Shown one piece after another: positions 25,461 to 61,920 of a stretch of DNA of 64,000 bases. The translations under genes and the position numbers were made by a program. Position 1 is the first letter of the stretch, and every line of letters starts with the position of its first letter. The notes beneath the pieces were generated by a model that was not told the DNA's origin, did not search any database, and was given only the letters and a program-made list of their open reading frames with translations. Origin of the DNA: Schmidtea polychroa (taxonomy: Eukaryota); assembly GCA_044892525.1 (NCBI GenBank), contig CM097888.1:38068001-38132000 (forward strand), in the 5' to 3' direction.

Positions 25461-26990
25461 TCAAATTCTAGGAAATAGTTCAATCCGACAACCGTCACAT
25501 AATCTCAAAGTAAGAGCTTCGTCCACATCAAATGACTGATTTTCACATAGTTTAAAATCAAAATTATATAATATTCTTGAAATTAATGTTTTAGCTTCAA
25601 ATTCTGCAAAATATCTCCCAATGCATGATCTTTGACCCAATGAAAATGGTATATTTGTATATGGTTTGTCTTTTCCAATTATCATTCTTTCTGGATTAAA
25701 CTTTGCCTTATCCTCGCAATTGCTGTAATGAATTGGTATGAAATTAATAGCGATATCCGTACCAACCGGTAAAATATGACCGCCAACTTCTTCTAACCCT
25801 TTGGTTACTTCTCTGATAGTAGCATATCCTGGAGGATATAGTCTTAATGCTTCTCTCCAACACATTTCTATATATGTTAATTCTTTCAAGTTACAATACT
25901 CAATCTTAGAATGTAGATGGAAGAAATTATCAACTTCTTCCTGAGCTTTCTTTTTTACATCTAAATTATTAGCTAGAAGATAAAAAAGAAAAGCTATGCT
26001 GTTTGATGTTGTTTCCTGTCCGGCGATGAAGAGAGTCACAAAATCGTCTACCATCACATCTTCAGACAAATTAGACTTTTCGGAGTTTCTAATAATGAGA
26101 TCAATAATGTCATTATTTACTTCATCATTGTGATTAAAGGTTTTGAGTCTTTCCTGTAAAATTTCCTTTCCAAAATTACGAAGAAAGCAAACTGCTTGCC
26201 GCCTGCGTTTGACTTCTGTCCAGTTCCATGGTTTATACTTAAAAAATGGATCATTGTAGCTTTCCGAAATCGCTCTTGACGCAGTATAGACAGATTCATG
26301 AAAGACATTATCATCATCTTCTAAACATCGGGATTTTATAGAAAAAACTGATTCAAAAAGTATATCAGTTGTTACTTTATTCACGTAATCCAAAAGAGAG
26401 AAAACTTCACTGTTTTTCATTAATTCATTAAACTTTATAACCAATCTTATTGCATGCCTATCAAAAATTGGAAATAACTTTTTCAAATAGCTTTTATAAA
26501 AGGCTGGATTCAAAGCAGCTCGATGTATTTTCCACATTTTATGATCGCATTCCGTTAAAAGCCCCTTGCCCATGAAAGGTTCTCCGAGCAATATTTGTAA
26601 TGGCTTGTATAATTTATTAGACTTCGGATAATTGGAATTTAAACAAATTGTTTTTGCTAGTGAGGAAGAAGTGACCATGACTATAATTTTATGAAATATG
26701 CATAGTTTAAAGATTGGCCCATACGTTTTATCCAATTCTATCCATAATAAATGCCGATTTCGTTTGGCTAGCATCAATTGTTCTGCGTTTCCAATGAAAA
26801 AGTTTCTAAAAGGTGGATTTGGCAAAGATTTGTATTGCCGTCGAACATAAAGGATGTATAATGAATATAAACTTACAATGAAGATGATAATGATAGTTGG
26901 AGTAACAAAACATGAACCAATGGATACACATGAAATTAGCAAAACAGACACCATAAGAAAAAAGAATGTAAAAGTTATTAAAAATTTCAT
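25461..26990 (-). CDS. Cytochrome P450, CYP46A1-like (cholesterol 24-hydroxylase-like), single exon, 509 aa
   Basis: N-terminal membrane anchor, I-helix FIAGQETT, K-helix EALR, meander FNPER, heme loop FSLGQRSCIG. GKGLLT and DDFVTLFIAGQETT are CYP46-like. Confidence 0.93.
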   Translation of the reverse strand: MKFLITFTFFFLMVSVLLISCVSIGSCFVTPTIIIIFIVSLYSLYILYVRRQYKSLPNPPFRNFFIGNAEQLMLAKRNRHLLWIELDKTYGPIFKLCIFHKIIVMVTSSSLAKTICLNSNYPKSNKLYKPLQILLGEPFMGKGLLTECDHKMWKIHRAALNPAFYKSYLKKLFPIFDRHAIRLVIKFNELMKNSEVFSLLDYVNKVTTDILFESVFSIKSRCLEDDDNVFHESVYTASRAISESYNDPFFKYKPWNWTEVKRRRQAVCFLRNFGKEILQERLKTFNHNDEVNNDIIDLIIRNSEKSNLSEDVMVDDFVTLFIAGQETTSNSIAFLFYLLANNLDVKKKAQEEVDNFFHLHSKIEYCNLKELTYIEMCWREALRLYPPGYATIREVTKGLEEVGGHILPVGTDIAINFIPIHYSNCEDKAKFNPERMIIGKDKPYTNIPFSLGQRSCIGRYFAEFEAKTLISRILYNFDFKLCENQSFDVDEALTLRLCDGCRIELFPRI

Positions 26991-35820: not shown

Positions 35821-36636
35821 CAAAAAAGTGATAATTTAAGCCTTTTGCTGCAAATAATGTATTTAATGAAAAAATTTTCGACTATAAGATAATCCTTATC
35901 AATCTCCTGGAATTTAGCAATCTTCCCGAAAATACATTTCTATATTTCTTTTATTTACTTTTTCTTAATTCTCATTGGTTCTAAATATAATTTTTTTTAT
36001 TTCTTTATTAAAAATTTTATTGAAAATTAAAATTAAAAATAAAATAAATACCAATTAAAATTCCAAAATGACACAAACTAAAATTTTTTAGTGTTGATTA
36101 ACACTAAAGAAGAAATCATGAATTTGATCTGTTGTCACTGACCTTGAGATTAACTGACAACATATAAAAAATATAATAAATTAAAAAGTAATAATTAAAA
36201 TAATAAAAAAAAATTTAGGAAATATACTTTCAAAAAATAGAATTTAAAAATCAAAATTGACACATTTATTGAAATATTTAAATAGCGTATATAAATAGTT
36301 ATTGGAGGCTTTATTTTAAAATATTTTGAAATATTTTATTAGGCTTAAAAATTTTTAGTTTGTCATTTTGGAATTTTAAATGGTATTTATTTTATTTTTA
36401 ATTTTAATTTTCAATAAAGTTTTTAATAAAGAAATATAAAAATTCATAATAAGAAAGTATATATTATATTTAGAACCAATGAGAATTAAGAAAAAGTAAA
36501 TAAAAGAAAGATAGAAATGTATTTTCGGGAAGAAGATTGCTAAATTCCAGGAGATTGACAAGGATTATCTTATAGTCGAAAATTTTTTCATTACATACAT
36601 TATTTGCAGCAAAAGGCTTAAATTATCACTTTTTTG

Positions 36637-37550: not shown

Positions 37551-40500
37551 CTTATAATAATTATATTCGAATGAAAATTGACTACACTTACTCGCAGCCT
37601 CATATGCTGATGCATTTTATAAATTGTGTAGAATAACAGCAAGGCCGTAAATATGCATCTTAAATAAATTAAAAAAATTATTATATCAAGATTTCTAATG
37701 AATTCCAAACTTTTTCTTTTCAATTCATAGAAAATAAAAATTTTTATAAAAATAAAAACCAACTAATAACAGAAAATGATTCCTAACCAGGTCAGTAGAA
37801 AATATTAAAACAAAAATGATTAATTATTCATTAAGATTTTGAACCGATCAACATGCAATACATAATTTTTATACATTTCTATACAACATTTCTATATATA
37901 ATATAGCGACAATTTTCAATAAAATAGGTATTTATGATGTAGTTGCAATTGGATATCTGATTGCCCTGATACCCATGCAATATTATGTATTATTATTTAC
38001 ACGTTGGGTGCTGCAAAACTACAAAACATTTGATCATCTATATAACTTGTAAGACATTGAGAAGCAAGATTTGTTACACGTGGCCTCGGAAAATATTATA
38101 TGCAGGGCCCCTTCCCAAAAAGGAAGAAATTATACATGAACATAACTTTATCAATCTATTTAATGAAATATTTATTTCTTCAAAATATTCAATAATATAC
38201 ATACATAAACATAATATTTTTTATTCTTATTTCCTACAAACTTTTTTTACTGCTAATTCCTTGATATTATCATCAAAATTTATCTGTTTTGTTACCTCCT
38301 ACTCTATTAACAACATAGTTATCCTCTCTTTTTGCATAGTTGCTCTTAGATAATTTTTAATTAACTTTAATTTGGAAAAACTGCCTTGCATTTTGTGTCA
38401 AAAACTTGCCCTAGCTACTAATAATTGTTAGAAATATGAAAGCGCGGGCCTATGGGTCTGAATGTCTACTGTACACGGTATGCTTCTCATGGCACTCAAC
38501 GTGTTAATGTTGAATATATCAAAATTACTTATGTTATTGTTTATTACTTTATAGATCAACAAAAAATTGTAACACGTGCTGTAGACAGAGTGGCCTTATC
38601 TACTGAGCTAACTGTGCTTAACACAGGAGTACCAGCAGAATGTGGGAGGGTGTCCATCAATGTAATATATAAATCATTTTTGTATAAATTAATATGTATA
38701 AAAAAATTAAAATTTTCAATTTTTTAAACTTTTTCATTAAAATATTTGAAGACACATATACTTATAAAAACTATGGAAATTATAATCTGTATTTATAAAG
38801 TCAGCAATCTTTTATAATAATAACAAACAACATTGAACTTACGCAAATATTGATATAAATATATACGGTAAATTTGAGTAGACTTTCTGAGTGAATATTA
38901 ACTAAAAATAAAAAGATTTAATTTTCGTTTGAAATATTCACAATTATAACTTCAATGTGAAATTTGTCTAATGTTAATACATTAAATCCGCTTATTGTAA
39001 ATAAGAGTTGATAAGAAACTTTTCCTTCAAATAGAGATTTCGGGAAAATATTCTCGAGAAAAGTACAATTTATTTCTGAAAGCAAAATCTCTCGATTTCC
39101 GGAGGCGTTGAACAACCTTGACAATAAATATTGACTAAATATAGTTACTTAAATAAACAAGGTAAAGACTTTATTAATAAAAATTGCCATTCGTACATCT
39201 TTTTCACTTATATTTCGACAGTATCACTATCATCATCAGGTTACCTACATTCACTAGGGATGAATAACTATACAATATTGATAATTTGTTTATAAATTAT
39301 CAATATTGTATAATTATTCATCCCTAGTGAATGTAGGTATCCTGATGATGATAGTGTTGCTATCGAAATATATAGTGAAAAAGATGTACGAATGGCAATT
39401 TAAATATAGTTAATTTAGTGATTATTAATATATTGTATAAGTGTTTATATTAATTTGTTAACCAAATAAGTAAAAATTTATGGCTCCCAAAATAATACTT
39501 AAATATTTACTTTTCTAGTAATGCAAGATAAATTTTGAATTAAATTCCTGAAATATTGATTTAATACACTATTTCTATATCAATATTCTATATTCCACAA
39601 GCCTTATAATACAACACAAGAAACAAGCTGGAGGTTCAGGTATACAACTACGAACGAAACGCAAACTTTACCGTGATTTGTGAATTGAACAATGACATTA
39701 TTTTCCGCAGAAATAGGAATATTCAAGGTAGCTGGAATATATAATTGAGACTTTCCTACTTTTTAAAAGTCCAATGGTCCTGATTCTCATAAAATTTGAC
39801 AGTTCCTTTGAGCCGGGATTGCGTGGCATGGAGTAGAAAAAAATTAAACATACACAAACAGGCACATGTATATTTAAGTAGAGAAGCTCTGACCAATCAA
39901 AACGACCTTTCTCACAATTATTCATTTCTATCAATGATTATGACTGGTACTGCTAATAGACCTAACTGTTGGGTTATAATTGAATAATAATACTAGTCGG
40001 TGGTTCTGATTCCTTGTGTTCTATAAAATAAAACACAACACTCCTAACGTATATTTGTATTTACAGTTATTTATTACCAACTGCACGCTCGAATTGTTAC
40101 AACAAGAAATGATATACGTTATGACTACCCGACGAGTCCCGCTGCGGCTATGGATTCCTTGCACTTGAACAATAATCACCTTCTATAATCTGATTCTGAT
40201 CCGATCCTAATTGATCTATAACTTCACTAAATCTTCCATTTTCCTTACTTTCAATGAATTTAATATGTCCTCAAATCACACTCTCAAGTTCTTTGTCCCT
40301 ACTTGAGGCAAAATGCCGGTGGTTTCTAATTTTGTAAATAATAATTGTATATTATATTAATAATTTAAATATAAGTATAATTATAATATAATTATATAAT
40401 TTAAATTAATAGAATGATTGTAGAATGATGTTTTCTTGCTCAAGATATTGTTGGCATAAAATAATCCTCGTTTTTGAATATTGTGAATAAGAATAAATAT

Positions 40501-43500: not shown

Positions 43501-46500
43501 AAATTAATAGATAATCGTGTGTTTCTATGGTGGATATTTTATGGTCAAATATTGTTTTATTAAAACAAGAACAATTTAAAATTTAAATTAATAATAATTA
43601 ATAATAATTATTTTAAATCATTTAAATTTTAAATGATTTAAAATAAAAATAGTTATTCTAATACCTCATTGCAATATTTACCAATACGACCCTTCTCAAT
43701 ACAATATTCACTGCAATCTCCATCGGGATTACAATATCGGGCTGATTTATTAATTATGCATTTACATGGTGAACATTTTTGTCCATTTATGGGTGATCCT
43801 TGAAATCCTTCTTTACATTTTTGACATAGATCACCGGTTGTGTTGTGTAGACACTTTGAACACTTTAATGACAATGATATTTGAGAGTCCNNNNNNNNNN
43901 NNNNNNNNNNNNNNNNNNNNNNNNNNNNNNNNNNNNNNNNNNNNNNNNNNNNNNNNNNNNNNNNNNNNNNNNNNNNNNNNNNNNNNNNNNNNNNNNNNNN
44001 NNNNNNNNNNNNNNNNNNNNNNNNNNNNNNNNNNNNNNNNNNCCTGAGTGGCTTATGCAGGATGCATGGCCATTGCAGTTACATGCAGAACAATGGGATG
44101 ACAAGAAAGACCAATTGTTTGTTGTTGTGTAATAATGATGAAAATTCAATCTTTTACTTTTGTTTGAATCTATATTAGGACCATAAACTGTTCCTTCGAT
44201 ACACTGCAAATAAAAAAAAATATCTCATAAATTAATATTTATTATTTGAAAAGTATATAATATTTATATTATTGATGATATAAAAATAAACGAATGACAG
44301 ATACATAGAAATTTATTATTAAAATTCAGTTAGTTACAAATACAGTTGCAACAGGCCTAGTATAAATCAACACAGAATGAACAAAATAAACATTAGCTAA
44401 GTTATGCAAAAATAATTAAATTTTTATATGATCTCTAAATTCAAAAATGAATTTACAGTTTTTATTTCGAGTAAATTATTTTCTAATCTTAATATTTTTC
44501 TTTTTCTTTACAAAACACACTAAAATACATTTTCTAAAATTTTAGTTTAATTATTGTTTAATTGAACTAATTTTTCTAATTCACGTTTTTTCTATACTTT
44601 TTAATCAATCCATTCCTTATATTTTAATTGTAAAAACATTCCATAATTGAAATTGCAATTAATGACCTCCACCTTATATACTAATTTTTTTGTTGTCAAT
44701 TGTTCAAGGAATTTAACTTGATCAGTGTAAATAAATAATTTCCTTTATCTCGGAAAAACCAGAGGGGTAGGATAAAGTACAAAAAACAAACTAACATATG
44801 ACAATTGGCTAAAATCATTTTTCTTATTTGAGGGAACCTTAAATAGTATAAATATAAAAGTATACTTTTAATGGATTCTAAATGTTTAAAAATTGATTAA
44901 AAGTAAATTTCAGCATAAAAAGAATCATAGGTAGTCTCTAATTGGAGGTGTCTAAATAATAATAAACTAAAGGCTGGATGAAATCTTTAATGTTTAACAA
45001 TAACAGTAAAAAGAGTTTTGAAAGAAATTAAAATACAAGCAACAAAGAAGGAAATTATGTGATAAGCCAGTCGCATAGAAATTACATTTAAATTGTTAAA
45101 TGAAAATCATGTATAGAAAAAGAATGATATTTCTGATATAAAAATTCTCATTTGATAGATTTAATGATAAGAGAGCATAAACTTTTAGTGGAAAAATTAA
45201 TGCATGAATTGAATGATGTTATTACTTATAGTTTCGTCAAATAATCAACCTACTTACAACTTGGAGAGGGAGGCGGCATGATCCAAAATTATATCCTATT
45301 GTTACATACAGTTGTTTAACAACAATTCTAATCAACCTGAATCCTACAATTAACCCAACAAATGATCTATAAAAAATAAATTATGAAAATGAATTATATA
45401 TTAGCCGAAATTAGTTGTCTTTTTTGTAATGTACATTTCATTAGCTGTGAATATCATATGACATGAATATGTTTGAAGTTTAAAGTTTTAAACCTAAAAA
45501 ATGATAGAATTATTCAAATACATATTTAGTAATTTAGTTTGTTGTCAGTGGCGCGTAATCACACGCGCGTATTGCGTCTATTGTATGTTATTTTTCATAA
45601 AAAGGCATTGCTGTCAATACTAAGTGAATTCAAAATAACAACTAAACGAGTACTTCTAGAATATATACATCAGTAAATTTAATTTTAAATACTACATTCT
45701 ATTTTCTTTCATTTTCCATGTTTTATTATAGTTTACTTGATATATTATTAATTAGATTAATTTTTAGATTAATATATTATAACGCATCAAAATGACTGCC
45801 CATTTCATGTTTAACATATTAACTGCAGCCTCAGAAATTGATGAAGTTTTTGTGAGGCCACACTACCTTGCTATGCTTATATGTGAATAATATGTAACTC
45901 ACATGGCACCTATTTCCATTGTAAATGCTAGTTGTATTTAACTCACGTGGCAGTCAACGTTGAGATAATTAGTTATTTTTATATCCTCGCAATGTTGAAA
46001 AAATTTTGACAAAGGACTATCTTATAGTCGAAAATATTTTCAATAAATACATTATTTGCAGCAAAAGGCTTCAATTATCATTTTATTGTTTTAGATAATA
46101 AATTCTGCTACCAAGAAATCATCATTTTATACTAATAATTAATTAGTATTCTTAAAATAGCTTTACAGCCATACATTGTTAAATAGAAAATTATGTCAAG
46201 AGAGTTTTTGTAGTGCAAAAAAGTATTGGTCTTATTGTAGGAAAGTTAGATGAGAAGATGAATACATAAGAGGAAAGCAAAAAAATTGCAGAATCTTAAA
46301 CAAGTAAGATGCTTTAAATGTCAATCAACGGAGCATTTATTCAATTCTGTCCGAAAAAAATCAATCGGAAATGTTACAATTGCACAAGTAATGATTGGCA
46401 TATGAGAGTTAGAGTATAAGGAGAAAAGTAAAGTCAGGCCGGTCCTCGACTTCCGAGACCTAAATGAATCTATTCAAAGTCACTACCATGAAAGTTTACG

Positions 46501-49500: not shown

Positions 49501-52192
49501 CTTATATTTGTTATTCATAATGTTGTAAATAAAATTAATAATAAAAAATAAACTTAAAATAGTCTGATTCTAAAATCCTTCGAATTCAGTATCAGATTCA
49601 TCACTAGCAAAATGTTCAATAATGTCATCAGGTGATAGTTCCACTATATCTATGTATGTTTTCTTCTAGGTCCTGTTCATTTCCATTGACTTCAAAAATG
49701 GTGTCATCTTCTGTTCTATCTAGAGCAGTGTTTCTCAAACTTTTTGCATTTATTACCCTTTCGTTATTTATTTAATTTTTAAGTACCCCAGTAAGATTTT
49801 AAACGTGCACGAGTAACTAAAACATTAATTTTGACAACTAACAAGTTTTAATTGGTTTTTCTTTATATTACATATAGTTATATAATAAAAAAATTTAAAA
49901 AGAAATGGCTACAATGAGCCTGTTTGACTGAAACTAAAAATTCTATTCTTGGGTTCCTGCAAGCTAAAATTATATCATTTTCGGGACACAGACTATTTAT
50001 AATTTTATTTTTTAATTCCGTTACAACAGAAAAACTAATTTTATACAAATACGCAGTTGAAAATGGCAAAGTTCTAAGAAAGCAGCATTTCTTAATTCAT
50101 TATACTCATTTTTGGGTTTTTTCCAAAAGGCTTAAACATCTTCCATTTTCAATATGGTATCCACGGAAAGATCCATTAGTTTTCCATTCATAATATCTGA
50201 AATTCTGGCTTGTTCAATAAATTTGTCATTAAACAGGCCCATAACCCAGAGCTTACTGTTGTATTCCTCCTCATCCATACAAGGAAAATATTGTTCGAAG
50301 GTTAATTCTAAATTTGTAAAATTTGTGGTTATTGTGGTTTTGAAACTTTCACTTAAAGTAATTTTGTTTTCTTGAATAAAGTTAGTAAGCTGTGAAAATG
50401 ATATAAAATTTCCGTATAACACATTTCTCTTCTAAAACAATATTTTCTTCTTGAATGCATTTACTTTATCATGTGTTCTGAAAATAATTGAATTAACTTC
50501 CTTTAACTGAGGATTGTTGCACTGAAGAACATTTCTTATTTAATTTGATCAGAAAGCGGTTCATTTGTACTGGTAGGTTAACGAAAAATTTTAATTTACA
50601 TGAAAATTATATTATGTTAACACAAAATACTTTTAATTATTTCAACAAATATTGCTAATTAATTAGATTCACTGCAAAATTCAGTTAAATACCATATTAA
50701 AACAATACTATTATTACCCCAAACTTAATTAACTCAGCAAATGTCCACACCATATACAATATTTTCTGCAAATATTTTGGAATTTGTATTTGGAAGCACC
50801 ATTGAATTGATATTAATTCGCAGCAAAAAGTATTTATTTAAAAATTATATATTTAAAAAAAGTATTTATTCTTAGCCTACCCGTTATGTATTAAATCACA
50901 ATCTGTGTAATTTCATTTTCCACGAATTTATAATTTTCAACAATACTTCTTTAAATACATATTTTATTGGAGTAACTTTAATATTTTTTCGCGTACCTCA
51001 CTTTGAGAAACACTGATCTAGACCATTGTTAATGCGAAATTTTCAAAAAGGTTCTTGAATCATATCAAGTGACATAGAATCCTAGGCATCTTTTACTCAG
51101 TGACAAATAAAAAAAAATGTTGGGTCTCTCAGGAAGTTCTCTCTTTTTATAATTTCATCAGAACATTCATTCTGATCACATCTGGCGGACATTATCTAGG
51201 AAGAGTTTGTTAAAACAGACGTCAAGCAGATAAAACTTGGAGGTCTAACCGCCGGGTATAACGGATATGTCGAAGTGCTTCTTTACAACAGCAGTTGCGA
51301 TAGTTTCTTTCATATGCGCACTGAATATATTCCAAACCAAATGATCTCTTATCTATCAGAGTACCAGGTCGGCGGTCCTACCCATTTTTCAGCCAATAAA
51401 GAACAACAGCTTCTTACTTTTCTGATGAGCTCTGACGATGACACCTGATTGCAATTTCGCATCTTTAGCAGGAGTTTTCCGTTTAAATATAACAAATGAC
51501 TTTAATTTAGTTACATCAGCCATGTAGTCAAGGACAACAGCAAAATGCATTTCTCGTGACCATACTCTTTTCTTCAACTTCTAATTCTGCCTTCTTTTTA
51601 AGTTAGTCTATAATTGTAATTTCAGAGATTCCTAATTATCGCGCTGCTACTGAATAGTTACTAGGTTCTACTATTTCGATAGCTCTCAGTTTGAAAGACG
51701 TATCATAAAAAGACCGTTTTCTTTTTACACTCATTTTATAAACTCTAGATAAAAATTTAATTTAAACTAAGAGTGGTTTATTAATTATTCTTATTTATAT
51801 TCTTACTTACTAAAATGTTTACTAAGAGTTTTAATAAGAGTTACAAAATTAGATTCTGAATAAGGCATTTGCTGAATAAAATACTTAAATAACTTTGGCT
51901 TACGTATACAATTAAGATTTTATGTAAGAATACATGTGACTCATGGTGTAAAAGGATCAAAGAATGACCCGATTTAAAGCAAAATATACTTGTAAATATT
52001 TTTCATTGCATAATTAAATTTTATATTTTTATTCCATTGGTAATTATTAAAACAAAAAATTTTCCTTTGATGAGAAATTGAGAGTTCGTTAGTCTACGAT
52101 TCCTTTGATAATATTAAGTTGGGCGTAAACTAATCCCTTTTATCATATTGAAGTCTAGTTGTAAATTTTAAGATTAATTCACTGCTTACATA

Positions 52193-52230
<38 letters not shown>

Positions 52231-55200
52231 TTGTTTTGATTTTATATATTTAATTTTCCATTTGTTATGGAAATTGGATAAATGATTTTCGCAATTTGTT
52301 AAATAATTTTGATATGCTATTAACAATAACAACAGAGTAGAATAGAGTGATAAATGAAAAAATATAATTTAGAGAAAAAATCAACTATGCTGAGAATTTT
52401 TGATGTTTTACAGAGACGTTTGTAAGATTCCAACAGCACAATTAATTTCACTGAAATATTGTACCTTCCATAAAACCTCTTATTCGTTGCTTCTTTCTGG
52501 TATTCCAAATAGATAATATGGCAATGGCAATGTATGGTTGTAAAGCCATTTTATGAATACTAATTAATTATTAGTTATTGATTATTTTTTATATAAAAAT
52601 TTTGAATATTAAATAGATTTTTGAAGACAATTACGTGTTTTGATTTATACATTGCGAGGATATAAAAATAACTAATTATCTCAACGTTGACTGCCACGTG
52701 AGTTAAATACAACTAGCATTTACAATGGAAATAGGTGCCATGTGAGTTACATATTATTCACATATAAGCATAGCAAGGTAGTGTGGCCTCACAAAAACTT
52801 CATCAATTTCTGAGGCTGCAGTTAATATGTTAAACATGAAATGGGCAGTCATTTTGATGCGTTATAATATATTAATCTAAAAATTAATCTAATTAATAAT
52901 ATATCAAGTAAACTATAATAAAACATGGAGAATGAAAGAAAATAGAATGTAGTATTTAAAATTAAATTTACTGATGTATATATTCTAGAAGTACTCGTTT
53001 AGTTGTTATACTGGATTATGGCAATGTTAATTAAAATATGAAATTCGAGTAAATTAACAGTTATCTGATCGGAGGCTTATTTAAGATTATTAGGAGGTTC
53101 ATCCTGTAAAACATTAAAATCAGTTTTTGTTTCCATAAATTTTATTTCAGTAAATATCAGTATCAAATTATATCTTTCTTTCGATCCTTTTTCCATCTTT
53201 ATTTCTTAAGATGTATCGTCTGTCATGCACTTTCTCTATCATTTTGTACGGACCTTCATACCTGTCCTGGCCTTTGTGTCGTGTTTCTACTTTTACTAAT
53301 ACTTCTACATTGAATTTTCTCCTTGTTTGTTCTTCTAGTTCTTCCTTTATCGGTATTTCTTTGGACCCGTACCATTTTTCCCTGCTAATCTTTTTTCCAA
53401 AAACTATCTCTGCCGGGCCTTTCCCTGTCGTTTTTTGTTTGGTTGCATTTAAAGTGAATTCGACTTCTGGTAATATCTCTGCCCAATCATTCTTCTTTCT
53501 ATCCTGTAAAGTAGCATTTATCAAATCCCGTATTGTCCTGAATTGTCTTTCTATCTGACCGTTTGTTTGGTGATGGTATGGACTCGAAAAACATAATTTA
53601 ATATCTAGCATCTTTGTGAATTCTCTCATCATTCCTGATTCAAACGCCTTTCCGCAATCAACTCTTATCTCCTTTGGGCATCCAAATCTTAAAATCCACT
53701 TTTCTAAAATCGTTTTCTTTATTGTTTCTTCGTCTTGTTTTGTTATCGCTGTCAAGACTTGATACTTACTATACTGATCTATTATGATCTATTATACTTC
53801 TTACGTCCTTTTGTTTCTGTCAACGGTCCACATAAATCCACGAATATAATTTCGAACATTTCCTTCGAATCTTGTTTTTTTACTGGTTCTTTCGTTGTTA
53901 TTGTTAAAGCCTTGGTTTTTTGACAAATCTCACAACTTCGAACAATTTCCTGAATCTGACTCCACAGGTGTTTTCCAACATATCTATCTTTAATATAATC
54001 GGCTATCTTCTCGACTCCAGCATGACACAATAGTCTATGTATTTCCTTTATTGTTTCTTGTAACTCATTTTCAGGTATCATCGTTTTCTTTCGTACTTCT
54101 TCTACAATTCCATGTTGGATGTTGCTTCTTCCTTCTTCTCTGATCGAGTCTAGTAATCTGGTTTTTATCTTTCCTTTCTTAGCTTCTTCGTGGGCCATTT
54201 GACATTGAACACACGTGTCACATTTAGTTCTCGACACCATGTCTGCATTTTGGTGATTAATACCCTTTCTGTATTCTACTCTTATATCTAAACTGCTCAA
54301 ATAATTGATCCATGTTTGGAATTGTGAAGTAATCGGCTTCTTGGTTGTCATCATAAACGTGATTGCCTTGTGGTCTGTCCTGAGCGTGAATCTTCTTCCG
54401 TAGAGATAGTGCTTAAAATGAATGCAAAAATAATATACCGCCAATAGTTCCTTTCTTGTAATACAATATCCTTTCTCGTGGCTCGTCATCGAGTGTGATC
54501 CATACGCAATTACTCTTTCCTTTCCATCTTTATCTCTTTGTGAAAGTACTGCTCCAATGGTATCGAAACTAGCGTCGGTATCTAAAATGAACTCCTTTTT
54601 CAGATCCGGAAAACATAAGATTTGCACCGTCGTGAGTGCTAATTTCAATCCCTCAAACACGCTATTCGTTCCTTCACTCCATTCTAATTTTTTGTTACTT
54701 GGTCCGCTACATAATTGTTCTAACATCCTTGCCTTCTTTGCATAATCACTGATGAATCTTCTATAATAATTGCAAATACCTAAAAAGCTTCGGAGTTTCT
54801 TTACGCAATTAGGCTTCCCAAAGTTCTGTATGGCCTGAATTTTAGATGGATCTGTCTGTACTCCTTCCTTGCTGATTATATGTCCTAAGAATCTGATTTC
54901 TTCCTTTATTATTTGGCATTTTTCTGGATTAATCCTTAGGCCTGCTTCCTCAATCGCCTTTAACACTTCTCCGAGTATTGTATAGTGTTTCTCTTTACTG
55001 CTTGAATAAATCAAGATGTCGTCCAAATACACCATTGCTACCTTTATTTTGCCTAATACTTTTGTCATCATTTCTTGGAACGTACCTGGTGCTGCTGCAA
55101 TTCCAAACGGCATTCTGCTGAAACAATATTGTCCGTTCTTTGTTGAGAAAGCTGTTTTCTCCTGTGATTCTTCTTCTAGTTCCACTTGGTAATATGCATT

Positions 55201-58200
55201 ACCTAGATCGATTGAACTGAAAAAGACGGATCCTCCTAACAAATCCAACATCTCGTCTATGTTTGGCATTGGAAATGCCTGCCTATTATAAGTTTCTCAT
55301 CAGTTACTCATTGAAAAAAATACAAAGTTTTTGAAAGATAGATAATTTTTGTTCAACACATTTAATAAGTTCTTCATTAAGACCTAATTTAATGTGTAAT
55401 GGTGAAAAATTCGTAGCTGGTGATTTAACTAATGATATATTAATCAAATTTCGGAAATCTTTTTTTATTTTTTTAAGCATCTTTTAAAAGACCTGAATTT
55501 AAGAAAGTACAAGAAACAGTCATCCTTATGGTTTTTCCGTTGTCATTAAATGTGAGTGTTCCAAATCTAAATGAGGATAGTTTTCCTATTGTTCAACAAC
55601 TTATGTTTTCCACTGAAATTCCTCAAGGAATATAAGGAGGTCATAATGAAAAATAATATTGAGTTTATTTTGTTAACATCTAAATAGATACTTTAGAATG
55701 TTGCAGACATAGAAACTAATTTTTTTGAAAACTCATAATGAACCATAAATTAAAAAAACTTTAAAAAGAAATAAGGACTTTGTTTTAACAGATACAAAGA
55801 AAAGGTGATATTAATCCAGTAATAAATATAATATAAAACATGTTTTATTCATTTTTTTCAAAAATTAATTGTTTTTATAAGATTGAAATCCCACTGGCAT
55901 TATTTGATTTAGCTTAAATAAACTGGGGAATTTTATGATTGTAAAGAGTACCCCTGAAACTGGTATTCATCTACAATTGAAATCCTGAAGCATTTTTTGT
56001 TTGAATTTTGGTTAAATTATTCAGCAATATTTAATAACTGATTGCAGCCAATTAATATTATAACATCTTACCGAAATTCATAGAGGTTAATGCAATTTTA
56101 TAAGCTGAAATTTTTCCTCCGACAATTAAAATTGTAGAATTATTTTTCAAAGACAATTGGCCACCAATACTAATAAATTCTCTATTATATTTATTCCATG
56201 TACGTTTTAAAACATCGAATTGATAAATTATTGGTGAAATTTTGGTCTGGGTTTTGTTATTCGAGTCTTCAGTCACAATTTTTCCACCGACAACAAAAAT
56301 CTTATAATTAATGAAAACCATTGCGTGAAGGTATAGTTGCGGTCCGGAATTATCAATAACTGTCCTATTCAAATATACATAAACAAATATAAATATTCGG
56401 AACTAAAATTAATTATAAAATTATTCAAGAAGTGAGAATAACAAAGATTACTTCACCTTACAACCAAGATTTTAGCTTTCTTTTGTATTCTGTCCGTAAT
56501 TTATGCACATTTGGTGAATTTGGTTTAACAAAATCAAATTCAGCCATAGTTAATTAAGGTCCCATAAAACGAGAGAAAAAATGTTGGTAAAAAAATTCAT
56601 TTTATCAAATTATTAACCATAATTTTTTATAGTGTAAATCCGGGGTTAGCAACCTTCGTGCATTGCGAGCCACATTAAATTTTAAAAAGAATGGTGTAGG
56701 CTGCATTATTGAAAAAACAATAAACATATATTTGAATAAATAGTTAAACATACATGGCAATGATTTAATTATAAGATAACGTAAATCAAACATTCTTCTC
56801 ACAATATATTTCGACAGTTTTCATCAGGTGGGATATAATAACTATGTAAATTAAGGATTTTAAACAAATTTATTAATTATATATAAAAAAAATTTTATTT
56901 AATAAAAACATTTAATTGTTTTTAAAAAACTAGGGGCTCCGCCCCTGTTCGCTTCGCTTCAACAACCCCGTTAGAACGCTAGAAATAATAGCGGTAAAAT
57001 GATAATCATATCACGTTTGAAGAAGGGAACGAAGCGGAGGCGTTACGTAAGCATAGTATAACTATGTTATTAGAGTTTTTTAAGTTAAACATGATTGATG
57101 AATTTAGTCGAACACTTCCATATGATAAAATTCTAACGGGATAGGTGAAAAATAAAAAAAAAATTTTTAAATAAATAATAAAAAATTTAAAAAAAAGAAA
57201 AATTANNNNNNNNNNNNNNNNNNNNNNNNNNNNNNNNNNNNNNNNNNNNNNNNNNNNNNNNNNNNNNNNNNNNNNNNNNNNNNNNNNNNNNNNNNNNNNN
57301 NNNNNNNNNNNNNNNNNNNNNNNNNNNNNNNNNGAGGGAACCCTTAGCTTTTTTATATATAGAGATTATAATTAAATTAATATATTATTTTTTTTAATTT
57401 TAGCATTCAAGATTTAATTTAATAATTTAAAAATTTTATTAATTATTTAATTTACTACAAACCATCAATACATACAATATAAAAAAACTTATTTAAAAAC
57501 ACTCAAAACACAAGTATTTACTGCATTCTGCACATTAATTGTCGGATTCAATGACTTTATCAACAACGCCTCACAAATCACACGTTTCCAATAATTATCG
57601 AAATTTTTTAATAAAATTTTAAAATCAGACATATAATTAATAAATTTGTTTAAAATCCTTAATTTACATAGTTATTATATCCCACCTGATGATGACAGGA
57701 AAACTGTCGAAATATATCGTGTAAAGAATGTTTGATTGGCGTTATCTTATAAACATATTTGATACATTTTTTTTGCAAAAATTCACAAATTGTCATTACA
57801 TCTCTTCAGAAAATAATAGCGGTTATTATAGAACTAATGCTCGCCCCAACAGTAAGAAAACTCATAATTGAGATTATGAACACCACATGTGTATAAATAA
57901 CGGAAATGGGAATAAGGCTGAAAAAGTACGCTAAAATCTCGGTTATAAGACGTAGTCACCTTTGTTATTCTTAATCATTTTGACTGACATTTGTTGGCTC
58001 CAAGTTGCATGGCGGCATCACGAAGTACGTGTATAAACATATTATTGACATGGTAAGTATGATCAATTTTTATGGGCCACATACAAATTTCAACAACACA
58101 CTTATTTTTTATCAAATATAAATTTCCATCTTCAAAAATTTAATTTCTTAAAGTTTTTGTCTTTCGAGATAAAGTTTTCGACTAACAGGTCCATTGTGAT

Positions 58201-61200
58201 ATTCACAGATCAAATATTTAAGGGCAAAAATTTGCACTTGATAAAAATATGTGTGCATTATGAAAATTTATATACTTTTGACATCAAATCTCTTGTTTTG
58301 CTAATTCCATGTAACAAAATAGCAGAAATGTTTGAATATTTTTTTGAAAAATTTCCTTTCTTTAAATACATTTTTGAAAGTTTCAATTTTGTAAATATGA
58401 AGATTATTGAAAATGTCAAAATAAATATACCAAGTTAAGATTCGCATTTCTCAATTCAACAAAAACAAACTCAATATTATGTGTTGTAGAGATTTTAAAA
58501 ATGATTCTAACTGATAAAGGGTACGAAAAGTCAATTACGAAGTAAATTACTAAGAAGCTCTTCGGTTTTAGCAAAGCATAACTAATGTGAATAGGAATGA
58601 GAGGCCAATATTAGATCTAAAAATTTTTACTAAAGCCCAAAAACAATTGTTAATTACGAATTGCAGAATTTCAATGGCTTTCAAGCGATCAAAAACCGAT
58701 ATTAATAAAAATTCTCGTTCGTGGACCGATAATCTGGTAAGATTTGAAAAAGCCATTCAACTACGAAAAAGCATCCCATGTTTGGAAGTATCGTTGGAGA
58801 ATTACTGCAAAATACCTCTGAAAAGTGCTATCATTGGCAGATATCATTATCTTGCAAAAATCGAGGAGTGTCGCAAAAGAAAATTTAAAATGATCGCGGA
58901 AGAATTGGAGTTTTTGTGGATCAGAAAATTAAATTTCCATTTCATAAAATTGAAGTCTATAGCGAGAAGAGTGGACAATTTAATATCTGAACACAACACC
59001 TTATTAAAGCGTCCCAGTCAGAAAGATGAAAAAGTAACTTTTGCTGGTATATTTGACATCACCTGTACAAATTGAGAGTGGTTTAGTGGGGAAGATAAAC
59101 TCAGAAACTAACTATGCTGAATCCTACAAGCCTATTGAAAAAAAGAATATTGTCTTTCAGCACCATTCAACAACTGAAGGCTCTAGCGTTCAAAGAAATA
59201 ATAAATAAAAGCTTTAGAATAAATAAGGGTGAGAAATTTTCCCCTTCGGCCTTGATTGGTCAGTTGGATTGAATGAAATAAAATTTGATTTTTTTAGCAT
59301 TAGTACCAGGAGGGTCTGTATTATGCAAGCAATTATCTGCTGACGGTATCAGCTTGCCCACGCCATCCCATGTAGAAATTCTGAAAGCAATGAAGAAACA
59401 GGCTGAAAAGATGAAAATAAATATGAAGAGTACTTTGAATTGATATATCTTTCACTATTTCATCGACAATGGAGAATTCCCGTACATTAAATTTCGTGGA
59501 CTATGAAATTTGAGCAATCCACGGTGGAATTCACGTGGAATCTGTGCTATCCTAGCTTTTATATTATTGCCTGAAATGAGAAATCGATTGCATCAGATAT
59601 GTTCAATTATTTGTGGAATCTGGTTGGACATTTGGTTTTCAGATCACAATATTCAAGAAAATGCCTATACTAAGTTATCAGAAAGTCTTCAAAATTATGA
59701 AAATACTAAAAAGGGTTTTGATAACCACTGGAGTAAAGAACCATCGATAATTAACAGCCAGCGCAGCAATATTTGTGCTGAGAGGGACATACATGTTATG
59801 TAATTGCAAATCTCCTGAATCTCAATTTACGCTTTATATTCAGTAACAAGGATTTATGACATAACATGTTGCTTCACTTTCAAAACCATTATTACACAAA
59901 GAAGAAATCTTATATTTTTTGGTGAGTGATGTTTTTGAAAGGAAAACCAAAAGTAAATATATATTTTCTACTTTTTTTCTCGTAGTGTAGGACCATGACC
60001 GTCACATTTTCAGAAAAAAAGTCAAAAGGTTACCACCCTAATGTCAACTACTTTGTATTAGTCACACTTGTCTTTAATTAGAAAAAAATTAGTGACGTCG
60101 GAAAATACGGACATTGAGTAAATTTTAGTTTCAATTTGATATACACGATATTATATGTTATAACACTTAATTCTTCAATCATAATATATTAATTATCATA
60201 ACCACTGTATAATTGAATTATAATAATTTCGAAATCGACAATTTTAACAGAAATTGTAAAATTTCAAAATTCAACATTCTCATACATAATTTCAAATACA
60301 TATTTTAAATAATTTACTTTTTTAAGTACTTAAATAAACACGGTAAAGACTTTATTAATAAAAATCGCCATTCATACATCTTTTTCACTATATATGTTGA
60401 TAGCATCACTATTATCCTCAGGTTACCTGTATTCACTAGGGATGAATAACTATACAATATTGATAATTTATGAACAAATTATTAAATCTATAAATTTTTA
60501 AATTATAAATAACAATTTTAAATAATAATTTTCAAAAATAATTATTAACAAACAATTATTTTACACTTAAAATTCTTTAAAAATATTATTTTAATTATTT
60601 TTTTTAATTATTTAACATAACTATTATTCAATATACATCAACATACAAAAACTTAATTAAAAACATTCAACACAGACGTATTCACTGCATTCTGCACATT
60701 GATTTTAGGATTGAAAGTTCTTATCAATAATGCTTCACATTTCACACGCTCAAAACAATTATCAAAATTTTTTGATAAGATTTTAAAATCCGACATTTCT
60801 AATTCACTCATACAGACTTTATTATGATCCTTAAAATTGGACACTCTCTTCGGTCGACAGTGTTCTTGAACTCGAGTAGAGATGACAGGAAGTCTCTCCA
60901 ATGTATGTGGCATTACACCCATTACATGTGAATTGATAAACGAGATCCGAACACAATCCAACGGGCGTTTGAGATTTACTAACAAACATACTACGTACTT
61001 TGCACGATTTCGAAACAATTCTATAATTCGATTTACCCAGCTGTTTACCTATCATTTTTTTGAAATCTTTATATCATTCAGAATACAGCAATACCATCGT
61101 ATATTTCGGCTCAACTTGTTTGATAGTATCAATACTCATATTCACTACATCATTCGACATATCAGTCAATTTACATTCATTCATACTACGATCCTTAGCA

Positions 61201-61920
61201 TTATTCATACATTTATCAACAGTCTCTTTCAACGTTAACAATAAAAACCATTTTGAATAGCCATTTTTCACCAGTAATTCAACTAATTTATCTACAATTT
61301 TTACTGAATTTTTAAAAGTGGAAGATAAGCAGCATGATTGATAAACAAATCCTTTCACCATATTTCTTTTATATTCAAATTCATAAAAACTCTCTGGGGT
61401 AGTATAGAGGTTAGTATCTGTTGGTTTTCTTTGAATTTCTGTCTCATATTGTTCATCTTTACGTTTAATTTTAAAATAATTTCGATTCTTAAAATTCGAG
61501 TTCGTTAGTTTTCCTCCACTCACAAAATATTAGTAAAACCCAATCTAAGGTTTAAATGTGTAAAAATATATTTTTTCTATTATAGAAAAATAGTATTACC
61601 GAAAAAAAATTAAATAATTAAGTTAAGATGACAATCAATTATTTTATTTAGATTGTGCAATTAATTAACATATTTAATATCATACCAGATCAACCAAGAC
61701 ATATAATTAATTGTTATATTATATATAATGTCTAACCATTCATTGGTATGCAAATTGAGAGCATAGAGTGCATTGGAAACACTAATGCTGCTAAAATTGC
61801 TCATCATTAGTCCCCCATAAACCCAAATAATTGACCCACTGCGAGACGTGGAATGATATAGTAATCCATCAAAATTATTAAGTAAACTTTTAAAAATTGG
61901 TTCCATCCATTTTCCAGAAC
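37044..61920 (-). CDS. ATRN: Attractin-like type I membrane protein (Kelch repeats, PSI, laminin-type EGF, TM, cytoplasmic tail), multi-exon; 5' CUB/EGF exons not located
   Basis: Exons seen: Kelch about 61920-61670 (LLYHS..SGSIIWVYGG) and 56364-56072 (LYLHAMV...FVVGG); PSI 48845-48520 (ECVWC...GEC...CGW...GVGK); 44203-44043 (CIEG..GP...WSF..CSACNCNGHASC); about 43865-43665 (CSKCLHNTTGDLCQKCKEGFQGSPINGQKCSPCKC); 41734-41529; 39116-38951; TM exon ending 37592 (CIFTALLLFYTIYK); last exon 37550-37044 (MERPY, CIEP, AVVTFLFQSP). Order and motifs match ATRN/ATRNL1. Some internal exons unresolved. Confidence 0.9.
38000..38503. mobile_element. piggyBac-type non-autonomous element (about 500 bp)
   Basis: TIRs CACGTTGGGTGC vs CACGTTGAGTGC (revcomp); TTAA on the right (38504-38507), TTTA on the left. 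Confidence 0.55.
39205..39277 (-). ncRNA. Hammerhead ribozyme motif M1
   Basis: AC-CUGAUGA-U-GAUAG[UGAUA]CUGUC-GAAA-UAUA-A-GUG; one U is missing for the minimal type I fold, but a full type III fold is possible with upstream sequence. Confidence 0.75.
39340..39377 (+). ncRNA. Hammerhead ribozyme motif P2
   Basis: CUGAUGA 39342-39348, extra U, stem II GAUAG/CUAUC, GAAA 39365-39368, UAUA loop, UA, GUG; stem I weakened by a U-U mismatch. Confidence 0.75.
45635..45995 (+). repeat. 361-bp repeat, copy 1 (inverted partner at 52649-53009)
   Basis: Exact reverse complement of 52649-53009 except for one mismatch found. Confidence 0.93.
46190..48350 (+). mobile_element. Degenerate Gypsy-like LTR retrotransposon (gag zinc knuckle, RT, RNase H, integrase), interrupted by an insertion at about 47165-47608
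   Basis: CFKCQSTEHL knuckle; RPVLDFRDLNE; LD.KK.YLQLH.DESLW; HINLAEL..V...EVMTNS.SV.SW; integrase HHF, CLQCRAIDP...W.RIAIDTTHY...YLS. Confidence 0.85.
47523..47608. repeat. 13-bp GC-rich tandem array (TGTCCGCGACGAA x5 plus a degenerate unit), probably a DNA transposon terminus
   Basis: Five exact units at 47523-47587, then TTGTCCTGCGACGTATTGCCC, where the retrotransposon RNase H reading resumes. Confidence 0.85.
48520..48845 (-). CDS. ATRN: Attractin-like PSI-domain exon
   Basis: Phase-0 splice GK|CIEG to the exon starting at 44203 reproduces the conserved GKGKCIEG segment. Confidence 0.85.
49255..49345 (+). repeat. Repeat family A copy with hammerhead-like relic (CUGAAGA...AAAUAUAUCG)
   Basis: Aligns to 8450-8525 and 11100-11185; CTGAAGA at 49265-49271. 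Confidence 0.75.
49400..51790 (-). mobile_element. pogo-family (POGK-like) DNA transposon, degenerate, split by a nested hAT
   Basis: N-terminal KRSFYDTSFKLRAIE, HFAVVL...AD.TKL...IFKRK, LVW..FSAH, VIPGG.TS....LDV..NK; acidic C-terminus ...SDTEFEGF* resumes left of the insertion. Boundaries approximate. Confidence 0.8.
49726..51015 (-). mobile_element. Internally deleted hAT Charlie/Buster-type element (1290 bp)
   Basis: TIR CAGTGTTTCTCAAA at both ends; 8-bp TSD ATCTAGAG/ATCTAGAC (NTCTAGAN target typical of Charlie/Buster); C-terminal PFSTAYL...FS...KNK...PRIE.LV..KQAHCSH. Confidence 0.92.
52649..53009 (-). repeat. 361-bp repeat, copy 2
   Basis: See 45635-45995. Confidence 0.93.
53171..55284 (-). 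mobile_element. Ty3/Gypsy pol fragment, copy 2 (RT, RNase H, integrase), no LTRs
   Basis: A 495-aa open frame with YLDD, DAS, TDHK and HHCC zinc finger (H..LCH...C..C), then a frameshift at a 10-bp tandem duplication (53776-53795), then the D-D-E core (VDLCGP, RVDCGKAF, NGQIERQF) and GPY motif. Confidence 0.96.
56072..56364 (-). CDS. ATRN: Attractin-like Kelch exon
   Basis: YLHAMVFINYKIFVVGG...YQFDVLKRTW and NNSTILIVGG align with attractin Kelch repeats 5-6. Confidence 0.8.
56800..56830 (-). ncRNA. Hammerhead motif M2, inactivated by an 8-nt deletion of the 5' arm of stem II
   Basis: CAC-CUGAUGA-AAACUGUC-GAAA-UAUA-UU-GUG; same as P1 minus UGACAGGA, with H17 U instead of C. Confidence 0.75.
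56930..57365 (-). mobile_element. Non-autonomous Helitron inserted in the PLE tail (spans a gap)
   Basis: 5' A|TCTCTATATATAAAA at 57365; 3' GC hairpin AGGGGC-GGA-GCCCCT ending CTAG|T at 56930. A/T insertion site, no TSD. Confidence 0.65.
57683..57721 (+). ncRNA. Intact minimal type I hammerhead ribozyme P1
   Basis: Stem I CAC/GUG; CUGAUGA 57686-57692; extra U; stem II GACAG/CUGUC with GAAAA loop; GAAA 57709-57712; palindromic UAUA loop; AUC cleavage triplet with predicted cut after C57718. Confidence 0.85.
58100..60041 (+). mobile_element. Internally deleted hATm-like DNA transposon
   Basis: LCKQLSADGISLPTPS, SNPRWNSRGICAILAFILLP, RSNICAERDI motifs; right end ...ACCACCCTAA (revcomp TTAGGGTGGT) at 60032-60041. 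Left TIR not found; subfamily from memory of motifs. Confidence 0.6.
60325..61523 (-). mobile_element. Penelope-like element, 5'-truncated (RT thumb, GIY-YIG endonuclease, 3' tail with hammerhead and poly(A) signal)
   Basis: RKPTDTNLY; LVYQFTCNGCNATYIGETS.HL.TRVQEH (frameshifted); CEALLIRTFNPKINVQ...LNVFN* (stop at 60653); hammerhead about 230 nt downstream; AATAAA at 60356-60351. Confidence 0.93.
60386..60457 (-). ncRNA. Hammerhead motif M3, degenerate (GAAA replaced by AACA)
   Basis: AC-CUGAGGA-U-AAUAG[UGAUG]CUAUC-AACA-UAUA-UA-GUG. Confidence 0.7.

Follow-up and report, generated by a model that had tools for sequence, protein, structure and literature searches.

A probable minimal type-I hammerhead in the 3' region of an abundant Penelope-like element family of Schmidtea polychroa

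The window, by which we mean the whole 64,000-nucleotide stretch of Schmidtea polychroa DNA that was analysed, carries on its plus strand, at 57683-57721, a minimal type-I hammerhead motif of 39 nucleotides (copy D). Its layout is CAC, CUGAUGA, U, GACAG-GAAAA-CUGUC, GAAA, UAUA, C17 and GUG, and every core nucleotide of the hammerhead is present (C3, U4, G5, A6, N7, G8 and A9; G12, A13, A14 and A15.1; U16.1 and H17). Stem I consists of three base pairs (CAC/GUG), stem II of five (GACAG/CUGUC) with a GAAAA loop, and one extra U, at 57693, follows A9. Helix III is a single base pair, A15.1-U16.1, which closes UAUA and so yields the self-complementary AUAUAU ahead of C17; such a palindromic loop 3 could allow a dimeric helix III. 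Cleavage is predicted 3' of C17, which is position 57718. The initial annotation had placed here a motif with all core nucleotides and these same stems, and the sequence reads exactly so. Copy D shows no contact between loop I and loop II.

Using a descriptor made of the core, an optional extra nucleotide, a stem II of at least 4 bp, GAAA, U-H and a stem I of at least 3 bp, we recovered from the whole window the copy D site only, and the chance expectation of this descriptor, estimated from 1000 dinucleotide shuffles, is 0.008 per shuffled window, or 0.002 if loop 3 is palindromic. A covariance model built from related elements, with copies D and B in its training set and copies A, C and E outside it, finds exactly five copies in the window at E<1e-4, the next match having an E-value of 0.24; copy D, itself in the training set, scores 51 bits (E 3e-15). 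A model match at 49600-49636 on the minus strand (E 0.28) was rejected as a copy and resembles, by eye, a reading frame.

Copy D is the only one of the five to be fully intact. The core is kept in one more, copy B (39339-39377, plus strand), the stem I of which is reduced to two separated pairs, G-C and A-U, with two mismatches. On the minus strand, copy A (39205-39242) has one nucleotide of UAUAU deleted, copy C (about 56800-56830) has an 8-nt deletion that removes the extra U, the stem II 5' arm and some of the loop, and copy E (60386-60424) carries G12A, A14C and G10.1A and has G at N7. By alignment the copies fall into two subfamilies, C/D and A/B/E; position 17 is C, U or A among them and the U3-A8 core variant also occurs in the window. 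Three forms of stem II are present (GACAG/CUGUC, GAUAG/CUAUC and GAUAG/CUGUC), which amount to one covarying pair and a G-U intermediate. These are the forms from which it had been proposed that stem II varies while keeping its pairing, a description that is right for all three but not for copy E, where an A-C mismatch occupies 10.1-11.1. Taken alone, covariation within the window is thin evidence.

The family had also been described as one of five copies, a figure that holds for the window but not for the genome. In a DNA run (X2; 35,741 contigs) the word depth summed over the element reaches about 3.4 million, where neighbouring single-copy contigs have 230-360, so that the element stands at about 10,000 times single-copy depth, depth not being a copy number; this puts the copy number of the family on the order of thousands. 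Contigs from RNA libraries cover the family as well, and one of them (X7, record 17) crosses the hammerhead uncut into the tail extension; these data are assembled contigs, in which cleavage ends are invisible and DNA carry-over is possible.

The identity of the element was established from the coding remnants next to the motifs. Upstream of the 3' end of copy E (60327-60485, minus strand), which comprises a decayed hammerhead and a tail extension, lies a frameshifted frame at 60656-61529 on the same strand, made of an RT C-terminal/linker piece (61077-61529) and of GIY-YIG endonuclease pieces in two frames (60834-61073 and 60656-61048); according to DNA contig depth this copy is 5'-truncated near 61545. 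Pfam run directly on the endonuclease and RT fragments of the window gave no useful score. An exhaustive HMMER search with the 151-residue piece of copy E found 51 proteins, and in the long homologues the match sits just past the Pfam domain RVT_1, ahead of GIY-YIG where the latter is present. The two other pieces of copy E align to the GIY-YIG region of one RVT_1 and GIY-YIG protein, P0004, over the blocks VYQF.C..C..YIGET, R..EH and EALLI...P..NVQ. A further minus-strand remnant, at 57492-57638, corresponds to the endonuclease C-terminus and to the 5' break point of the truncated copy C, and shows 53% identity to residues 459-496 of P0004. Because the homologues found by HMMER carry RVT_1 and GIY-YIG, and because the endonuclease blocks align, the frame of copy E can be assigned to a Penelope-like element (PLE); its pieces appear in the order of an RT followed by a C-terminal GIY-YIG endonuclease, as in an EN+ PLE. 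The hammerhead lies 3' of the endonuclease coding sequence in copies E and C, some 230-280 nt beyond the stop codon where observed, and with RT-linker and GIY-YIG remnants adjoining both copies the PLE link made in the initial annotation, previously assumed, is now demonstrated at the level of sequence.

Copy D itself is part of a composite. Copy C is a 5'-truncated PLE on the minus strand, extending from 56741 to about 57632 (about 0.9 kb, with a masked gap within); its 3' end, at 56741-56882, holds the decayed hammerhead and a 28-nt tail extension (56741-56768). Within it, no tRNA or repeat accounts for a GC-rich island at 56930-57070. To the 5' break of copy C, at 57631-57633, is fused head-to-head the short inverted arm that carries copy D, 122 nt long (57631-57752, plus strand), recognised from inverted repeats and alignment. 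The junction and the end of this arm are confirmed, because it is at exactly 57631/57633 and 57752 that the DNA contigs of other copies depart from the sequence. The composite is bounded by a probable target-site duplication, imperfect over 12-15 bp (left 56724-56738, right 57753-57764), in which 11 of 12 positions align, with two indels overall.

A second composite is built in the same way. The arm of copy A (39146-39287, minus strand, about 140 nt), with its hammerhead and a 35-nt tail extension, and the 108-nt arm of copy B (39294-39401, plus strand), with a hammerhead and without the extension, stand head-to-head across a 6-nt spacer, and are flanked by an exact 9-bp target-site duplication, AAATATAGT, at 39137-39145 and 39402-39410. 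In both composites the hammerheads point outward, and the 28-35-nt extension is found on the minus arm and is absent from the plus arm, the motif standing about 35 or 62 nt ahead of the 3' end in the window copies. The focal motif, which had been placed in a PLE tail, therefore sits in a short inverted arm that is without the 28-nt tail extension. Copy E is a single arm 3' of the RT/EN frame. PLE insertions are known to carry an inverted 5'-truncated copy at their 5' end and to have, at just one of their ends, a tail of 30-40 bp (PMC8557442), the tail being the stretch between two RT start sites (PMC11167929), and the A/B and C/D composites match both this published insertion structure and the two RT start sites. 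No direct pseudo-LTRs, full-length copy or direct repeat of the arm occur within the window, a statement that speaks for the window only, and no tandem arrays of hammerhead units were found at or around any window copy. As the hammerheads of each inverted pair are on opposite strands, they could not dimerise within one transcript.

When the two window subfamilies are compared, 17 of 17 positions making up the core, the extra U and UAUAU are identical, whereas outside them the arm is identical at 45 of 83 (Fisher p=1e-4). Within the subfamily the motif is not conserved any better than the sequence on either side of it, and among the best-supported differences listed only position 57722 of the focal arm departs from the family majority; the selection signal for the motif is one between lineages. 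We therefore considered related PLE DNA, in the form of contigs of the protein homologues, and four of six show the same hammerhead layout, again 3' of the endonuclease coding sequence, with the motif 110-380 nt 3' of the reading frame and with wholly different stems: AGA/UCU for stem I and GACGA/UCGUC for stem II in L001, UUGC/GCAA and GACUC/GAGUC in L003, CAG/CUG and AGCCU/AGGCU in L006, and a stem II of GAUGG/CCAUC, with C at N7, in L004. A metagenome scan with a pattern that fixes the core, the extra U, G10.1/C11.1 and UAUAU and leaves the pairing free returned 122 matches, nearly all of which form four of four free stem II pairs and three to five stem I pairs.

For the covariation analysis we retained 14 representatives, one per distinct family and with two probable chance matches included, and excluded copies A, C and E of the window, which are decayed duplicates of B and D; the G10.1-C11.1 pair is pre-set by the search pattern in eight of the 14 rows and carries no weight there. 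In this set 79% of the cells are paired, against 53% in shuffles, and the covariation score reaches 0.72, where shuffles give 0.21 and slid partners 0.13-0.19. Stem II is 90% paired with double changes at all five of its pairs, and stem I shows double changes in all five columns, its inner three to four pairs covarying. None of the 14 representatives departs from the core, the extra U or AUAUAU, and position 17 is A, C or U in each of them and never G. The proposal that the hammerhead structure is under selection is thus supported by strong covariation across related PLEs, a score of 0.72 being reached in none of 500 shuffles.

General resources and thermodynamic predictions were less helpful. 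The Rfam hammerhead models gave no match at the gathering score, nor at E<=10 on 57500-57900 (401 bases); we think that the curated models were perhaps built without PLE mini-hammerheads having a 1-bp helix III. A full-text literature search for the motif strings matched primers and siRNAs only. By nearest-neighbour folding the catalytic fold has -0.6 kcal/mol, compared with -7.8 for the minimum free energy structure, stem I is lost when the motif is folded in longer contexts, and the homodimer predicted by cofolding differs from a hammerhead dimer. These folding and cofolding results are uninformative, because the tertiary contacts of the core fall outside the thermodynamic model.

Taken together, the motif is very probably the minimal type-I hammerhead that is conserved in a very abundant PLE family, and the focal locus a fossil of it. 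The truncated copy C (minus strand, about 0.9 kb) was inserted jointly with the inverted arm of copy D (plus strand, 122 nt), the outer ends of the composite representing two alternative 3' termini of PLE cDNA, with and without the tail of roughly 30 nt; the inverted arm arose, as we infer, from priming off both nicked target strands in a twin-priming-like manner. Copy D, with no promoter of its own, is a dead inverted arm, its motif being intact because the copy still matches the family majority, and it is in active source elements that selection keeps the motif 3' of the RT-endonuclease frame.

As to what the motif does in such elements, which the initial annotation had taken to be processed by the ribozyme, we lean only slightly towards catalysis: two copies on multimeric or separate PLE transcripts may pair through AUAUAU into an extended helix III, whereupon self-cleavage 3' of H17 would trim the PLE RNA. 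It is also possible, if less probable than not, that the motif is a structured recognition or assembly element for the RNP of the PLE RT-endonuclease, or a selfish passenger, and that self-cleavage is irrelevant to transposition. In the Anolis PLE, hammerhead-dead mutants left insertion in vitro unchanged, so that the ribozyme is not needed for it, and no RNA-seq ends were seen at the cut site (PMC11167929); metazoan PLE mini-hammerheads cleave weakly in vitro (PMC4209133), as would suit such a role; and Naiad PLEs thrive without hammerheads, the idea having been raised that hammerheads parasitise PLEs (PMC8557442). At our locus the thermodynamic weakness of the catalytic fold points the same way, as does a UGGCG motif 12-22 nt downstream of the hammerhead that is co-conserved in closer relatives. 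Against a non-catalytic role, however, all catalytic nucleotides are invariant despite protein identities of 30-57%, while the stems and the loop vary freely, and an invariant core together with a position 17 that is never G fits catalysis and exceeds what a protein-binding hairpin would need.

The shortness of the arms allows two further readings. In one, which we consider unlikely, the hammerhead and the 35-60 nt that follow it would be able to retrotranspose as a module of their own, and the recurrent units of about 110-120 nt would be full-length copies of short RNAs instead of random 5' truncations. Their 5' boundary would be fixed, at -48/-52 for arms A, B and D of the window and at -17 for a metagenomic family with no RT nearby, and the short RNAs might be initiated in the pseudo-LTR, or be processed by the ribozyme and circularised; if true, arthropod-type genomes would harbour a SINE- or retrozyme-like lineage that derives from PLEs. 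In the other reading, the short units (122 nt for D, 108 nt for B and about 140 nt for A) would not be by-products of PLE insertion but copies of a discrete retrozyme- or SINE-like element, non-autonomous and descended from the 3' end of the PLE. Arms B/A and D do start 48-52 nt upstream of C3, at points that lie within about four columns of one another in the alignment, but this shared boundary rests on two insertion events only, and most genomic contigs extend upstream of 57631 with a canonical 3' UTR (loose-end consensus). The metagenomic family, which has the same hammerhead layout, is made up of units about 115 nt long, which start at a fixed 5' boundary and are flanked by target-site duplications, and in 120 of its contigs (about 1 Mb, estimated) no PLE RT was found by tblastn; a 2026 preprint, moreover, argues that animal retrozymes derive from PLE pseudo-LTRs. 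In the window, however, copy D is fused to a truncated PLE body, copies C and E continue into endonuclease coding sequence and tandem arrays are lacking at every copy, and we hold a discrete element to be quite improbable. Lastly, a DNA transposon or MITE bearing a hammerhead-like string by coincidence would explain terminal inverted arms flanked by target-site duplications, but is effectively refuted by the PLE coding sequence that adjoins the arms, by ends that are asymmetric as in PLE insertions, by the single arm of copy E, by covariation of the conserved motif in RT-bearing contigs of other sources and by a chance expectation of 0.002-0.008 per window.

The preferred reading, a PLE mini-hammerhead in a fossil insertion, adds one very abundant PLE family with a standard motif in its 3' region, and is mostly a matter of annotation; for the role of the ribozyme in PLEs, the locus offers no better test than the published systems. 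The cross-lineage set provides clean covariation for a fixed layout (CUGAYGA, U, 5-bp stem, 5-nt loop, GAAA, UAUAU, H), which could seed a covariance model for PLE mini-hammerheads, a class absent from Rfam.

The CChMVd hammerhead is of the viroid type, with a stable helix III and loop-loop contacts. In its plus-strand form A9 is followed by one extra residue (De la Peña and Flores 2001, as cited in PMC4209133), and one extra unpaired nucleotide between A9 and 10.1 is thus shared with the window motif, a likeness in a single feature that does not imply relatedness. Animal non-LTR retrozymes and satellite hammerheads, such as Schistosoma Sm-alpha and newt satellite 2 (PMC7229834, PMC5680766), resemble the window motif in being of type I and in having a helix III that is short and palindromic; they work as dimers, and are probably mobilised by PLEs or derived from them; they consist of tandem units of 150-400 nt, with a 6-bp helix I, a 4-bp helix II, interacting loops and circular RNAs, whereas the window copies have a minimal layout and stand outside tandem arrays. 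The Anolis Poseidon element PAc, described in 2024, the hammerhead cleavage of which requires C3 and G8 (PMC11167929), belongs to the same element class; its two RT start sites account for an optional tail of 30-40 nt, a signature that each window composite shows at one end. In PAc, however, the motif and the beginning of the reading frame overlap, and cleavage has been assayed, whereas in the window family it lies 3' of the stop codon and is known from sequence.

The nearest counterparts are the minimal hammerheads that have been known since 2014 from the terminal repeats of metazoan PLEs (Cervera and de la Peña 2014, PMC4209133). In these, helix I is short, one nucleotide stays unpaired between A9 and G10.1, the G10.1-C11.1 pair is conserved and 15.2-16.2/loop 3 is palindromic, action as dimers being presumed; they occur in thousands of copies, mostly solitary and attributed to truncated PLEs, with opposite-strand pairs 100-700 bp apart and a U3-A8 core variant. 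The extra U, the palindromic helix III and the opposite-strand pairs have thus all been described before for PLE mini-hammerheads, and the U after A9, which the initial annotation took for a special variant of this genome, is the norm among them. The stem II found here, fixed at 5 bp with a 5-nt loop, differs from the 7-8 bp of Schistosoma and from the 6 bp with a bulge of Drosophila virilis. The window family shares with these published motifs the type-I form with an open stem I and short helix I, the extra nucleotide, the G10.1-C11.1 pair, the 1-bp helix III with its palindromic loop and the location in the terminal repeat region, as well as copies in the thousands and pairs on opposite strands, and the presence of several consensus families in one genome is likewise common to both.

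Two window copies of the Penelope-like element (PLE) family, the intact copy D and the single 3' end E, have in common a UGGCG lying 12-22 nt 3' of the predicted cleavage site (57736-57740 in D and 60362-60366 in E). Copies A and B, which form the second inverted composite, carry UGGCA in its place and the motif is mutated in the 5'-truncated copy C. The related PLE contigs L001, L003 and L004 have UGGCG just 3' of their hammerheads. The short arms, the inverted arms that lack the 28-35-nt tail extension, end 4-13 nt past UGGCG, and the motif may mark the inner RT start site.

The same hammerhead layout is found in a large family of metagenome contigs (L007-L126) recovered by pattern scan, with stem I AGAG/CUCU and stem II GCCUA/UAGGC. 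Its members are solitary units of about 115 nt each, with a 5' boundary fixed 17 nt before core position C3 and visible target-site duplications, and tblastn across all 120 of these fetched contigs found no PLE RT.

The 3' region of copy C, otherwise AT-rich, holds a GC-rich island (56930-57070, about 140 nt) that is present once in the window, contains no tRNA and is next to the masked gap 57206-57333. With this island the hammerhead lies about 640 nt from the endonuclease stop, instead of about 230 nt.

The window also encodes an uninterrupted 509-aa cytochrome P450 frame (25461-26990, minus strand; Pfam E 3e-72), a 462-aa frame with DUF4371 (12884-14272, minus strand) and a 162-aa frame without a Pfam match (58587-59075, plus strand). 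This last frame is partly covered by RNA-library contigs (X1) at 58582-58893. That region has 3-5 times the DNA depth of the single-copy sequence around it and may therefore be a low-copy repeat. A Ty3/gypsy-type pol fragment with RT, RNase H and integrase zinc and core domains (53168-55269, minus strand) adjoins a pair of 374-nt inverted repeats (45627-46000 and 52644-53017), 98% complementary and spaced by 6.6 kb.

A second mini-hammerhead family, whose core is a compensated U3-A8, has three copies in the window, at 35868-35907 (minus strand), about 36552-36590 and about 46006-46040 (both plus strand). Its layout is UUGAYAA, a single unpaired G, stem II of 6 bp (GAUUAU/AUAGUC), GAAA, AU and, last, U-U. 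Two of the copies are inverted relative to each other and face outward, about 640 nt apart; the third copy carries an additional unpaired nucleotide and a C-G replacing the U-G of the other two. The U3-A8 variant of this second family is the one described in Cercyon PLEs (PMC4209133).
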